Below are positions 47,506-61,898 of a DNA stretch of 64,000 bases, in pieces. Within the stretch, counting starts at the first letter, position 1; the number at the start of each line of letters is the position of its first letter. A model generated the notes under the pieces. That model was not told the origin of the DNA and searched no databases. It saw nothing but the letters and a program-made list of their open reading frames with translations. A program made the translations under genes and the position numbers. Origin of the DNA: Mantamonas sphyraenae STR306 (taxonomy: Eukaryota > Protista > CRuMs); contig JAPMXV010000029.1 in NCBI GenBank assembly GCA_026936335.1, forward strand, positions 434,001 to 498,000, in the 5' to 3' direction.

Positions 47506-49047
47506 TCATTCCTGCTTCTCGCCTTCCTCCTGTGCCTCGCTGCTCGCAGTGCTCTCGCTGTTGCTGCTCGTGGTGGTGGTGGTGGTGTTTGCGGCAGCTG
47601 CAGCCTCTGTCGTCAGCTTCAGCGCCTCCATGCTCTTGGCCAGCTCGTCCGTGTTGTCCAGATTCGCCATCACATCCTTGGAGCTGTCGAACACAGACTT
47701 GAAATTCTGTGCAACCTCCACCGTCTGGAAGCGGCATGCCAGTGTGTCTCGCGTCATCTCCTCGTCCGCAAAGTCCTGCGCAATCCAGTTCCACGTCTTC
47801 TCCGAACCGGCGTTCGGCGTGAGCTTGTACTTGGGGCTCACTGCGATACGCGGGCAGCCACAGGGTCAGCAACACGCACACCCACACACTGGGCCTCGAC
47901 ACACATCATGCATCAAAGCGGGGGAAACGCGGGGCACAGGGGCGCGCGCCGGGAGGGTGTGCCAGCTCGGGCGCGGACTGAACGGCTGCGGAATGCGCAC
48001 CAGCAGTCCAGCGCCGTGAAGCAGGATGCAGGGACCCCAGAAAAGCGATTCAGACGTGTTGAGCAAGATCTCTTCAAGCTGCCAGTGAGTTGTGATGCGG
48101 GCGACAGCGGACCAGAGAGATGCAAGGCGCAAGACACGACGTCGCGCGCCAAAATGGAGCAACGGACTCGAGGCCTGCGCCTTTCTGCTCTGTTGCATGC
48201 CTCGCTGTCCCTCTGCACAGCCAGGCAGGTTGCTCAACGTATGTATGCATGCGGGAAGCATGCTTGGCTGCCTGTGCGGTTGTGCGCGAGCACACAACCG
48301 CAGAGTTTTCTGGCGCTGCCCGGAAAGCGCATTCCGAGCCTCGCGTGCAGAAAGCCCGCCGTGCAGAGAAAAACCTCGCTGTCAACCCGTGCATTAAGAC
48401 ATATGCTTGTCTTGTTTGCGTAATTGTCTCATCATCATCGTCCCGGCGCAGGTGGGATGGGCATGCCTTGTTCACATCTCTCGACGCCCACTTACCGTAG
48501 TGGTTCGCGCAGATCTTGTAGGTTTTGTCGCGGCGCATCAGCACGCGGATGCGCTTGCTCTCCTTGTGCTGCAGCAGCTTCATCGTTCCCGTGCCGCGCT
48601 CCTTCCATTGCTTTGAGATGCTGTCCAGACGGTACAGGCGTGCGCGTCTGTAGTGTCCAGGCGGAGTCAGCAACACGCACGGTGCACATGCCGCCACGCT
48701 GATCACACCCGCACACAAAACGGAAAAAAACCTTCTCGCCTCACGTACGCCTCAAACAGCACGTCCTCGTCCTTTTCCAGCGAGTCCACATCCTGCGGCG
48801 TCAGCTCTGCCTTCTCTGTCTCCGTGTTGCTGGTCTCCTCCTTGCTGTTGCTGCTCTCCTGCGGCTTCTCGCCCTTGCTCACGCTTTGGAACGTGAACTT
48901 GCGGCGGCCGCCGCCAAACCGTCCCTTCTTCTCCTCGCCCTCGGCGCCCTCGGCTCCCTCTTCTGTCTTTGTCTCCTCAACCTTCTGCTCCTCCTGCGTC
49001 TGCGGCTGCTCCTCCGTCGTGGTGGTGGTCTGTTCGGGCTCACTCAT
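47506..49047 (-). CDS. RANBP1: Ran-binding protein 1; exons 49047-48749, 48647-48496, 47840-47506
   Basis: [10 protein letters not shown]|[36 protein letters not shown]|..[10 protein letters not shown]...DFAD..RF. Confidence 0.93.
48046..48440 (-). ncRNA. Intronic box C/D snoRNA, U27/snR74-type (18S Am28, yeast numbering), unusually long (~395 nt)
   Basis: C box AUGAUGA (48435-48429); 13-nt antisense to the 18S 5' end, AGACAAGCAUAUG (48412-48400), before D' CUUA; C'-like UUGAAGA (48077-48071); D box CUGA (48053-48050); terminal stem CGAU/AUCG; same strand as the host gene. Confidence 0.8.
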
Positions 49048-58599: not shown

Positions 58600-59605
58600 A
58601 TGTCTGTCACTCAGCTTCGCTCCTCCCTGTTCCGCACCGCCACCCGCGGCGTTTCTTCGTCAGGTGAGTTTCCGAAATCCTTCCAGTCATGGTGCCCCCT
58701 CGCATCAAGCCACACCCTCCTCCCCACAGCGCTCGCACTGCGCGCGTCCTTTGCTTGCCCCTGCTTCCATAGCAGGTTGCCGAATCCATTGTGCTTGCCC
58801 GGCTGTGGCGTCCGGAGACCTCCGGCTTGGCTTCGCGCCTCCACCGGCCGAATTTTCCCTCCCGTTTGCCGGGCCTGTGCACCGCCATGTAGTCTTGTTG
58901 AGACGATTGTCACGGCACCACCCGTGTTGCATGTTGTCTGTCGGCATGTAATTCCCCTATGCGACCGTGGCAGGTCATGGTGCAGGCGAGAGACGCAGAA
59001 ACGTCGCTGTTGTGAGGCCTTGCATGCCTTGGCGCGTTGGGCCGCGCCTACGTCGCGCAGGGGAATCATGCGGGTCCATGCTCATGGTTTCCGTCAGGAA
59101 AGCTGGCAAGACTGTGCATTGGTCCAGGTGCAGGTGTGGGAGACGGCCTCGATGGAGCATGGGGAGGCTCTGCGGAGTTTTTGGCGGGTCGGTCCGGACG
59201 AAGTTTCCGGAAAGGACGACGCTCAAACGCGACACAGACACAAACTGACACCAACGGGCACTGGGGTTTGTGTGGCACACAGCTTCCGTGATGTCGACTG
59301 TGGGCACTGCTGGTGACCACCCGTCCAACGACACGCAGGCCACCGGTATCGAGAAGCTCGAACTGGACGCCGAGAAGAAAGGCACCGAACTGTTCGATAT
59401 GGGTCTGCTGCGCGCTCCCTTTGGAACCGCAGAGGATCCGGTCAAGGTCCAATCTATTTACAACTCGCGCATTGTGGGCTGCACGGGCGGCAGCGGCGAC
59501 GCGGCGCACGACATCCTGTGGTTCGATCTCAAGAAGGGCTCCGACTTCTCCTGCCCCGAGTGCAGCCAGGTGTTTACGCTGACGCCCATGGACGAGGAGA
59601 TGTAA
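58600..59605 (+). CDS. COX5B: Cytochrome c oxidase subunit 5B (yeast Cox4-like); intron 58664-59282
   Basis: Basic/Ser-rich presequence; QATGIEKLEL, PFGTAEDPV.V.S...RIVGCTGG..HDILWF..CPECSQVF. Confidence 0.92.
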
Positions 59606-60643: not shown

Positions 60644-61898
60644 AGTACGTTGCATGTCCACACACGCACACACACACGCACACACATACACGCTCAGTCG
60701 TGTTGAGCAGCACGTGCAATGATACAGCGCACAGTAGGGAGGGCAAAGAGTGGGAAACGCTGACGCGGAAGCGGGGTTTTGGAAATTTGCAGTGAGCAAG
60801 CGAGGACGTGGTGGTGCCACCGGACACAAATTCCGCATGACTCTGGGTCTGCCCAACGCAGCCCTGATCAACTGCGCTGACAACAGCGGTGCCAAGAACC
60901 TGTACATCATTGCTGTGGTCGGCGTGAAGGGCCGCCTGAACCGCATGCCTTCTGCTGCGGCTGGGGACCTGGTGATGGCTACGGTGAAGAAGGGCAAGCC
61001 CGACCTGAGGAAGAAGGGTATGTGGGATGTGGTGTGGAGACGTGGGAGGGAGACGGAGGCCAGGGGGAAGGGTGGGAGGGGTGTTTGTGGCGGAGCGTGT
61101 TTTTTGCATGCGAGGGCGAGAGACGGGAGAGGAAAGGGCAGAGGAAAGAAGACGGAGGAGAGAAAACTGACACATGGAGGGTGTACACAGTGTGGCCTGC
61201 AGTGGTTGTGCGCCAGCGCAAGGCATGGCGCCGCAAGGACGGCGTGTACCTTTACTTTGAGGGTGAGTTTGGGCGTGGGAGCAAAGTGCATGGCGGCGGC
61301 GGCGGGGAGGAAGAGGGAAACGAAGGGAAGGAGGCGAGTGAAGGGGACAGGAGTGCATGGGATGGGGTGGATGGGTGGATTGGGTGCAGATGGTGTGTGG
61401 ATGGGGTCTCTGCTGGCGGGCGATGATTAGAACAGCGTGACTGAGGGTTTTTCCTGGGCTGTTTGTCCAGACCCGCCAAAGCGTGATTGAGAACCCCAAA
61501 ACACAATCATCTTTCGGGGCTGAGCCACAACCAGCGTGGAGACCCAGTGGTGGAAGGGACGGGTGGTGCGTGTGTTGGAAAGCACACATGGAAGAGGCGG
61601 TGTGCCGTGTTGCATGTGCACGTGGCGGTGGTGAAATGGGGCGGGTGTGAGAGATGGTTTTTGGGGGCTGTGCATGAAGGCGGGCCCGTGTGGCAGCTGT
61701 GTGTGTGGTGTGTTGGGGTTTTAAGTGGCAGAGTGCTGACGCAGTTTGGGTTGGAAATGGATGTGACGCACAGACAACGCTGGTGTGATCGTGAACAACA
61801 AGGGCGAGATGAAGGGCTCTGTGGTGAACGGTCCGGTGGCCAAGGAGTGCGCTGAGCTGTGGCCCAAGATTGCCAGCTCGTCGAGCACGATTGTGTAA
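60644..61898 (+). CDS. RPL23: 60S ribosomal protein L23 (uL14), copy 2; coding exons 60644, 60793-61017, 61191-61262, 61774-61898
   Basis: Same protein as copy 1; GT-AG junctions in phase. Confidence 0.96.
61414..61527 (+). ncRNA. Intronic box C/D snoRNA, snR39B/SNORD2-type (LSU Gm805, yeast numbering), copy 2
   Basis: UGGC/GCCA terminal stem, C-like CGAUGA, D' CUGA at 61441, C'-like GUGAUU, guide AUCAUCUUUCGGG antisense to the conserved LSU CCCGAAAGAUGGU, D box CUGA at 61520-61523. Confidence 0.82.

Follow-up and report, generated by a model that had tools for sequence, protein, structure and literature searches.

The window, by which we mean the whole 64-kb stretch of DNA that was analyzed, comes from a small flagellate of the CRuMs, a group of deep-branching eukaryotes, and carries a RanBP1-like gene on its minus strand. 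One intron of this gene holds the candidate snoRNA that is the subject of this analysis (Table 1); its length, as given in an earlier note on this DNA, was confirmed, its borders are GT..AG, and the boxes, guide, accessory element and stem named in that note all lie where it had placed them on the minus strand. The sequence and its open reading frames show that the intron separates the codons for 'ICANHY' and 'VSPKYKL' of the RanBP1 domain, a site across which RanBP1 homologues read uninterrupted, and the exon upstream matches the Pfam family Ran_BP1 (E 7e-20). The exons were searched one by one, with no joined gene model. The best match of exon 2 is a transcriptome ORF (P0001, 88% identity) whose frame continues through the introns on either side and for which no contig is on record, and no protein from the Mantamonas sphyraenae genome itself was among the exon 2 matches; the search with exon 3 gave no match. 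Mantamonas vickermani and M. plastica share the position of the intron. RNA-seq has been published for the matching genome, from poly(A)-selected RNA.

Table 1. The intron of the RanBP1-like gene and the elements of the candidate snoRNA, in transcript order, with positions in the window
Feature	Position	Strand	Remarks
Host intron	47841..48495	-	655 nt, GT..AG; RanBP1-like gene
Terminal stem, 5' strand CGAU	48437..48440	-	pairs with AUCG 48049-48046
C box AUGAUGA	48429..48435	-	aligns with C box of Rfam SNORD27
D' guide AGACAAGCAUAUG	48400..48412	-	13 nt fully complementary to own 18S nt 25-37; A28 is the predicted target
D' box CUUA, degenerate	48395..48398	-	1-nt spacer from guide; aligns with CUGA of SNORD27 consensus, equal spacing
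Structured insert	48087..48394	-	308 nt, between D' and accessory element/C'; MFE -150.9 kcal/mol
Direct repeat copy 1, exact 10-nt GACAGCGAGG	48374..48383	-	first 7 nt pair with 48109-48103, closing the insert
Insert domain A	48208..48371	-	three-way junction, 14-bp closing helix; pair probabilities 0.90-0.99; inverted repeats I2, I3
Direct repeat copy 2, 10-nt GACAGCGAGG	48200..48209	-	alternative partner of 48109-48103
Insert domain B	48113..48192	-	long irregular hairpin; inverted repeat I1
Accessory element ACUGGCAG	48079..48086	-	complementary over 8 nt to 18S nt 14-21; ends 1 nt before C'
C'-like box UUGAAGA	48071..48077	-	one mismatch to UGAUGA
D-guide region	48054..48070	-	17 nt; without found target; contains UUGCUCAAC
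D box CUGA	48050..48053	-	only CUGA between D' and branch-site region
Terminal stem, 3' strand AUCG	48046..48049	-	pairs with CGAU 48440-48437

Two box modules at the ends of the candidate RNA

The candidate has the terminal boxes of a C/D RNA, a RUGAUGA motif near the 5' end (AUGAUGA) and a CUGA motif near the 3' end. Between the CGAU stem strand and the C box lies a single unpaired nucleotide, the spacing of a canonical k-turn, and the guide AGACAAGCAUAUG starts 16 nt past the perfect C box and ends 1 nt before the D'-like box, an arrangement similar to that of SNORD27. In the guide duplex, A28 of the 18S rRNA sits opposite the fifth nucleotide upstream of D' (D'+5), in agreement with the claim of the earlier note that the D+5 rule leads to A28; an antisense element of at least 10 nt beside a D or D' box and a known methylated position at box+5, the hallmarks of a box C/D guide, are both present. 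Allowing up to one mismatch, this guide is the sole match in the window for the 18S-complementary 13-mer, and in 11-mer searches an A28 guide joined to a C box is found at a single locus in the 25-Mb genome. The guide 11-mer has four further genomic sites, which are chance occurrences, and none of the four has a C box. Because this is the sole C-box-linked copy in the 25-Mb genome, the A28 guide is presumably under selection.

The Rfam model of SNORD27 (RF00086) aligns with the 5' module box for box, through the C box, guide, 1-nt spacer and D'; the score of 20.2 bits (E 0.79) is far below the gathering score of 52, which weighs against the snoRNA reading, and only the 5' module aligns. This alignment of the 5' part supports the assignment to a U27/snR74-type guide in the earlier note. 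In the Rfam scan suggested there, no family matched at its gathering score anywhere in the 64-kb window, and at E <=1 the only match between 40 and 56 kb was an unrelated, miRNA-like one, so that the insert is without an Rfam family.

At the 3' end, four Watson-Crick pairs form the terminal stem in exact k-turn register, with 0 nt between the D box and the stem. A stem of a mere 4 bp weighs against the snoRNA reading, as do the internal boxes, which are both degenerate (D' = CUUA, C' = UGAAGA), and the 205 nt that lie between the 3' end of the candidate and the 3' splice site, a long way for an intronic snoRNA. D' and D are separated by 341 nt, and no other CUGA or good alternative D box occurs before index 388. 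We evaluated the 3' module against dinucleotide shuffles of the downstream intron, using criteria that were fixed after seeing the sequence. A CUGA with a 4-nt terminal stem in register is found in 2.0% of the shuffles; when a C'-like box 10-21 nt upstream is added to these criteria the fraction falls to 0.075%, and when the accessory 8-mer at most 22 nt from C' is added as well it falls to 0.005%. The 8-mer alone is present at some position of the intron in 23% of the shuffles and for that reason counts solely through the adjoining C'. The distant 3' module is statistically tied to the 5' module, and its chance origin is unlikely.

These observations bear on two alternatives. The first, that no snoRNA exists here and that a GC-rich intron prone to hairpins matches the motifs by coincidence, we regard as very remote. 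It would accord with the absence of any match at the Rfam gathering score and with the recurrence of the guide 11-mer at four more genomic sites; however, those sites have no C box, the 13-mer has the same placement between its C box and D'-like box as in SNORD27, the shuffle statistics of the 3' module speak against coincidence, and the ordinary snoRNA at 61414-61527 also escapes Rfam. The second alternative, which we consider highly unlikely, is that only a short RNA of ~75-80 nt is produced, with GCGA (48379-48376) serving as a non-canonical D box beside a wobble-only stem, and that the distant 3' module is coincidental. The SNORD27 model does end its alignment near 48383, and GCGA is followed by GUUUU, which is pairable with GGGAC upstream of an alternative C-box register. 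Yet GCGA departs from CUGA at the C and the U, the stem would be composed of four G.U pairs and one A-U pair, and the distant CUGA, the Watson-Crick stem in register, the C'-like box and the adjacent 18S antisense are found jointly in 0.075-0.005% of shuffles.

The region upstream of the D box is an orphan guide: no target was found for it in the organism's own 18S, 5.8S, 28S, ITS, U1, U2, U4 or partial U6 sequences (U5 was not found), and its best rRNA match, 8 bp in 28S, is at chance level. There is likewise no convincing D-guide duplex with U1, U2, U4 or the partial U6, such as a scaRNA guiding modification of a spliceosomal snRNA would form.

Fold, origin and possible functions of the insert

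The insert that separates the two modules folds far better than expected. None of 100 shuffles folds as well as the insert (MFE z = -4.76), which thereby passes the comparison with shuffled controls proposed in the earlier note, and the same is true of the whole ~395-nt RNA (z = -4.2, 0/100; opposite strand z = -2.7); in a GC-regressed ranking of MFE, the insert region is first of 159 windows across the 64 kb. Domain A includes a 12-bp hairpin at 48302-48275 and the GCAUGC hairpin, and every hairpin named previously is also predicted here, at pair probabilities of 0.9-0.99; the predicted insert helices with P >=0.9 include several G.U pairs. In domain B, the lower and middle helices have pair probabilities of 0.85-0.98 and the short apical helices 0.42-0.74. 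The long-range closing helix that had been described was recovered in part only: GGG + GACAGCG / CGCUGUC + CCC is in the centroid structure with a probability of ~0.56, and a competing pairing of its 3' strand has a probability of 0.43. The 10-nt duplication GACAGCGAGG is a trivial explanation for these two alternative closing pairings. Neither strand of the insert has an ORF with a Pfam family. A nested intron inside the candidate snoRNA was also considered and rejected, with no usable GU donor seen past D'.

The repeats suggest how part of the insert originated. The segment forming domain A has the exact 10-nt direct repeat outside and is closed by an 11-nt inverted repeat (91%), which is the arrangement of a target-site duplication around terminal inverted repeats seen in MITE-like elements; multiple copies are absent, and a DNA search together with a TIR-gap-TIR pattern search found one locus in the genome. 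Judging by the direct repeat on both sides of this inverted-repeat-closed segment, we posit that domain A, which makes up at least half of the insert, probably arrived as a single insertion, and this direct-repeat-flanked half provides a concrete picture of snoRNA growth by insertion. Domain B has no direct-repeat/inverted-repeat bracket of this type. The exact direct repeat could also be a sign of a recent, gene-inactivating insertion and, as such, count against a functional snoRNA. According to this alternative, a conventional U27-type snoRNA was recently broken by one or more insertions between D' and C', the long RNA neither assembles nor accumulates, and the boxes are too young to have decayed. 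We judge it to be unlikely. A broken gene would be consistent with the 10-nt direct repeat and 11-nt inverted repeat, which look like a target-site duplication around terminal inverted repeats, with the degeneracy of D' and C' and with a length far beyond the range of the family (PMC5824354); but the genome contains no second A28 guide as a replacement, the inserted segment is single-copy with no active element family visible, domain B is without such repeats, large internal RNAs are tolerated by C/D cores in experiments (PMC4041459), and a fold stability above that of every other window is unexpected of neutral junk.

A different alternative accepts that the long RNA is made and regards the insert as a selected functional domain carried by an rRNA guide, either for scaRNA-like localisation or protein binding or as a chaperone of the 18S 5' domain and central pseudoknot. 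The earlier note, too, inferred a large additional RNA domain, as a composite snoRNA, scaffold or second function; we consider a second functional module distinctly unlikely. The predicted structure is very strong and well defined, the closing strand has two alternative partners (0.56 and 0.43), and the internal hairpins of long C/D scaRNAs provide a functional precedent (PMC4041459). In addition, the segment before the D box, UUGCUCAAC (48066-48058), is, as had been described, a perfect 9-nt complement of 48238-48230, so that the orphan D guide could pair with an apical loop region of the insert; the associated p value of ~0.014 is marginal because the feature was chosen after reading the sequence. 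A pseudoknot or switch, or a self-target, had been suggested for this pairing: the 9-mer exists, but the D+5 position lies at the edge of the internal duplex and self-methylation is therefore unlikely. That the 9-nt pairing acts as a pseudoknot or switch and, with the two alternative closing helices, controls access to the orphan D guide is an equally doubtful part of the same alternative.

Against a second module stand the searches for one. The hairpin-H box-hairpin-ACA layout of a U85-type composite C/D-H/ACA RNA is not found inside the C/D frame; a heuristic scan located one H/ACA-spaced pair, which was rejected on account of a branched 3' element, no 5' hairpin and a paired H box. No G.U/U.G wobble stem was seen in the candidate RNA and, as reported above, there is neither an Rfam family nor an snRNA target. 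Between the insert and pre-rRNA we observed 11 complementary nine-mers, compared with ~15 estimated for these lengths, and complementarity of the insert to rRNA and snRNA was not above chance. The 10-nt duplication trivially accounts for the alternative pairing. A second function of the insert is, on this evidence, unsupported. If the insert were nonetheless functional, it would represent a composite snoRNA class outside animals.

A proposed enlarged U27/snR74-type guide

From the alignment of the 5' module to SNORD27, the linked 3' module, the lack of a nearer canonical D box and the fold of the insert, we think it rather likely that the RanBP1 intron encodes one ~395-nt box C/D snoRNA, the equivalent of U27/snR74, with an enlarged D'-C' spacer. 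The snoRNA would be released from the spliced intron, and its C box, D box and 4-bp terminal stem could form the terminal k-turn. Its D' guide would pair with 18S nt 25-37 and place A28 for 2'-O-methylation, and the 8-nt element by C' could pair with the neighbouring 18S nt 14-21. We further posit that the D'-C' spacer, for which ordinary family members have 5-40 nt, has expanded to 308 nt, that the insert may fold independently into a closed two-domain structure, and that its basal helix would rejoin the degenerate D' and C', so that an internal RNP could still assemble. We would liken the insert to an expansion segment of rRNA, an addition tolerated within structural constraints.

The candidate has in common with SNORD27 (U27) and yeast snR74 the C box, the antisense core GACAAGCAUAUG, the 1-nt spacer, a D' guide directed to 18S A27/A28 (the Am27/Am28 target) and an intronic location. 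In contrast, these RNAs are compact, at ~70-100 nt, whereas the candidate at ~395 nt is about four times the usual size; D' and D lie within ~60 nt of each other in the family and 341 nt apart here, with CUUA as D' and UGAAGA as C'. Of 59 environmental 5' modules of the U27 type, 45 have their first CUGA 15-59 nt past D'; a search of metagenomes for exact occurrences of the CUUA variant of the U27-type module gave no match, and none of the surveyed environmental U27-type homologues was seen to have the accessory pairing with 18S nt 14-21. Fungal snR74 members have a small hairpin exactly at the position of the insert. A number of yeast snoRNAs, including snR70, snR75 and snR76, have a short second rRNA antisense beside a box, pairing directly next to the methylation target, and a stem that parts D' from C', as in the candidate (PMC3116282), although their D'-C' stems comprise tens of nucleotides rather than ~300. 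Methylation is stimulated by additional base-pairing beside guides, and C'/D' motifs can be active although divergent (PMC3116282, PMC5389607).

With respect to size, a C/D core alone is enough for a large internal RNA to be processed and kept stable, and vertebrates are known to have C/D scaRNAs of 330-420 nt (PMC4041459). The term 'giant' used in the earlier note is a relative one. Oversized C/D RNAs are already known, and what we describe here is a variation on a known kind. The vertebrate long C/D scaRNAs (U90, mgU2-47, mgU2-19/30; 189-420 nt) and the composite U85 are intron-encoded with a terminal C/D core around a hairpin-rich interior, like the candidate (PMC4041459); however, they have snRNA targets and either a G.U/U.G wobble stem or an H/ACA domain with CAB boxes, whereas the only clear target of the candidate is 18S. 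Guide snoRNAs can also grow several-fold with their target kept, as exemplified by the Neurospora crassa C/D RNA Nc_CD_53, which is 200-300 nt, and by the H/ACA RNA snR86, which is ~1 kb in Saccharomycetes and ~180 nt in N. crassa (PMC5824354); both belong to other families and lineages and are likened to the RanBP1-intron RNA by enlargement alone.

Accumulation of the 395-nt RNA would mean that a ~300-nt spacer can be held by an ordinary rRNA methylation guide with its core intact. An architecture documented so far mainly for vertebrate scaRNAs would then be found in an rRNA guide, and in a deep-branching protist. Length-limited snoRNA finders and covariance models overlook such genes, as illustrated here by the lack of a match at the Rfam gathering score, and a lineage could therefore wrongly seem to be without the conserved A28 guide. 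We did not find a second oversized case in the COX5B intron (58740-59185), which has no visible C/D boxes. The normal-sized snoRNA at 61414-61527 of the same window, likewise missed by Rfam, has a hairpin in its D'-C' spacer.

The RanBP1 intron and the modules of the candidate snoRNA

The candidate snoRNA lies within a 655-nt minus-strand intron (48495–47841, GT..AG borders), which separates ..KICANHY at the end of the upstream exon from VSPKYKL.. in the downstream one. In the upstream exon, Pfam recognises a Ran_BP1 domain (E 7e-20). Because of this domain and because homologues are contiguous across the exon junction, both the RanBP1 host gene and its intron are real. For Mantamonas sphyraenae, the published FALCON assembly comprises 25.06 Mb in 78 contigs with a GC content of 59.2%, and the RNA-seq published with it is poly(A)-selected (PMC10492846). 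The sequence GUUGCUGAC is present in both RanBP1 introns (windows 47850–47875 and 48650–48680, minus strand), ~20–30 nt before the 3' CAG, and probably represents this organism's branch-site consensus.

The features that the earlier note had described in this intron (boxes, a 13-nt 18S antisense, a D'+5 position at A28, and an 8-mer) are confirmed. The k-turn geometry is canonical, with a stem, a three-nucleotide bulge ending in RU and then GA, and the stem resumes directly after CUGA. From D' as far as the branch-site region no further CUGA occurs, the second CUGA of the intron being due to the branch-site-like GUUGCUGAC; at the alternative D-like sites, boxes are non-canonical and stems mostly wobble.

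Features of the candidate snoRNA, 5' to 3', and predicted domains of its insert
Feature	Position	Strand	Basis or description
Terminal stem, 5' strand CGAU (one unpaired G next)	48440–48437	minus	sequence
C box AUGAUGA	48435–48429	minus	sequence
Linker, 16 nt, A-rich	between C box and guide	minus	sequence
Guide AGACAAGCAUAUG, then U	48412–48400	minus	sequence
D' position, CUUA	48398–48395	minus	sequence
Insert, 308 nt	48394–48087	minus	sequence
Domain A	48371–48208	minus	predicted three-way junction; 14-bp closing helix, 12-bp hairpin and GCAUGC hairpin (P 0.90–0.99)
Domain B	48192–48113	minus	predicted long irregular hairpin; lower and middle helices P 0.85–0.98, short apical helices 0.42–0.74
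Accessory 8-mer ACUGGCAG, then C	48086–48079	minus	sequence
C'-like box UUGAAGA	48077–48071	minus	sequence
D-guide region, 17 nt	48070–48054	minus	sequence
D box CUGA	48053–48050	minus	sequence
Terminal stem, 3' strand AUCG	48049–48046	minus	sequence

A permissive Rfam scan aligned 48440–48383 position by position to SNORD27, through the C box, the A-rich linker, GACAAGCAUAUG, one spacer nucleotide, and then CUGAAU in the model versus CUUAAU here. This 5' half scores 20.2 bits (E 0.79) against a gathering score of 52, a wide shortfall due to the absence of the model's 3' half at that distance. The link between the two halves was assessed by shuffling. Among 20,000 dinucleotide-preserving shuffles of the intron sequence after D' (554 nt), a CUGA with a directly adjoining 4-nt complement of the C-box flank arose in 2.0%, the same with a C'-like box (at most one mismatch) 10–21 nt upstream in 0.075%, and all of these with an 8-mer antisense to flanking 18S within 22 nt of the C'-like box in 0.005%, percentages that are generous given that the criteria were chosen after inspection of the sequence. 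Such an 8-mer alone is found anywhere in the intron in 23% of shuffles, so it is its place beside C' that matters. In order of magnitude, these values are convincing for a non-chance link of the distant 3' module to the 5' half. The best-supported explanation is a single oversized U27/snR74-type C/D snoRNA, which we hold with moderate confidence; an oversized snoRNA of this type is rather likely when one also counts the version in which the insert is functional.

Predicted targets of the guides

With the organism's own rDNA as reference and the 18S limits set with Rfam, the 13-mer guide perfectly complements 18S nt 25–37, the longest complementarity of the 395-nt RNA to the whole rDNA unit. 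Given the one-nucleotide spacer, A28 is opposite the fifth position upstream of CUUA. The accessory 8-mer pairs with 18S nt 14–21; this site is colinear with the guide target and only three nucleotides away from it. Across the genome (25,061,354 bases, 78 contigs), the 11-mer ACAAGCATATG occurs 10 times: five sites are rDNA, one is the RanBP1 intron locus, and four others have no nearby C box. Given that these four lack a C box and that a guide shifted toward nt 20–31 is absent from the genome outside rDNA, the RanBP1 intron locus is the sole candidate guide found there for the A28 methylation, which yeast and human share; this argues that selection maintains its intact guide and boxes. The rDNA units recur every ~10.7 kb on contig 78 of the assembly (G000 C78:10284, 21001, 31713), and additional 18S starts are located at C39:229676 and C40:5408.

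For the 17-nt D guide, we found no convincing target in rRNA, spacers, U1, U2, U4, and a partial U6; no U5 was found. A self-target for the segment before the D box had been suggested, and 48066–48058 does have a 9-nt perfect complement within the insert at 48238–48230 (p ~0.014 in shuffles). The D+5 nucleotide is at the edge of this duplex, making self-methylation unlikely; a tertiary contact is possible. The U2 and U4 snRNA genes each form an inverted pair 7–8 kb apart with identical scores (C43:49603–49805(−)/56479–56681(+) and C34:139342–139484(−)/147255–147397(+)), and two U6-like matches lie in direct orientation, 11 kb from each other (C69:263289–263345(−) and 274489–274545(−)).

Predicted fold and probable origin of the insert

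The insert is predicted to fold far more stably than its shuffled controls (MFE −150.9 kcal/mol, z −4.76; 0 of 100 shuffles as stable), as is the whole RNA (−170.2, z −4.2; opposite strand −160.5, z −2.7), and of the 159 395-nt segments into which the 64-kb window was tiled, none has a lower GC-adjusted MFE than that of the candidate snoRNA. The partition function predicts two well-defined domains, A and B. The long-range helix proposed to close the insert is present in part in the predicted fold and has a competitor: the strand CGCUGUC (48109–48103) pairs with GACAGCG at 48383–48377, closing the entire insert (P 0.56), or with GACAGCG at 48209–48203, lengthening domain B (P 0.43). Beyond this strong fold, nothing supported the proposal of a second functional module in the insert. 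The insert matches no Rfam family, its ORFs on both strands contain no Pfam families, no nested C or D boxes were seen in it, and 9-mer complementarities between it and the rDNA unit total 11, versus ~15 estimated for these lengths. An H/ACA composite was rejected, there being no hairpin-H-hairpin-ACA arrangement in the insert.

The two partners of CGCUGUC result from an exact 10-nt direct repeat (48383–48374 and 48209–48200) that brackets domain A, a 164-nt segment whose closing helix is an 11-nt inverted repeat (91%; 48211–48221/48358–48368). The arrangement resembles terminal inverted repeats flanked by a target-site duplication, so a single insertion event probably brought in domain A. Neither a DNA search nor a TIR-gap-TIR pattern found a second copy of the segment in the genome, so domain A can be assigned to no element family. 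The main rival explanation, recent disruption of the gene by an insertion, would accommodate the same repeats, and we consider it improbable. With domain A removed, the spacer would be one long hairpin directly behind D'; fungal snR74 has a hairpin at this place too, in a small form.

Comparison with other snoRNAs and with relatives

Among fungal C/D snoRNAs, 90% measure 80–135 nt and only one family reaches 200–300 nt (PMC5824354). The U85 C/D core was shown to support a large foreign internal RNA in both processing and stability (PMC4041459), and yeast has accessory rRNA pairing beside guides and highly divergent yet active C'/D' motifs (PMC3116282, PMC5389607); the architecture in the RanBP1 intron is thus a variation of a known kind and not a new one. 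The locus is clearly unusual and open to testing, it belongs to a lineage that matters phylogenetically, and snoRNA finders with length limits can miss genes of this kind.

Normal-sized snoRNAs also occur in this genome, as shown by a C/D snoRNA of ~112 nt at 61414–61527 (plus strand) with canonical D' and D, variant C/C', an antisense to 28S ahead of the D box, and a D'–C' spacer that contains a hairpin. The Rfam gathering scan of the window misses it, and Rfam negatives are therefore weak evidence for snoRNAs of this lineage. The COX5B intron at 58740–59185 (plus strand), considered as a second oversized C/D snoRNA, shows no C/D boxes by eye and does not resemble one.

The only close RanBP1 homologue found is a relative's transcriptome ORF (P0001; EukProt Trinity ORF, 135 aa), whose transcript retains both introns flanking exon 2 at the same positions. 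The intron position after ..ANHY (before G) is common to both; the P0001 intron there is AT-rich, with no C box or guide in its first 120 nt, as read from the translated frame. Searches for relatives used RanBP1 exons individually, and exon 3 gave no matches; a specific metagenome pattern for this snoRNA variant likewise had none. A pattern scan of metagenomes yielded 67 contigs with 59 distinct U27-type 5' modules. The distance from D' to the first CUGA is 15–59 nt in 45 of the 59, compared with 341 nt in the RanBP1 intron, and the outliers are mostly chance non-snoRNA matches or D-box variants. In each of five environmental contigs (L019, L030, L058, L066, L076), two U27-type 5' modules lie within a few hundred bases of each other and are thus eukaryotic copies in tandem or in a cluster.
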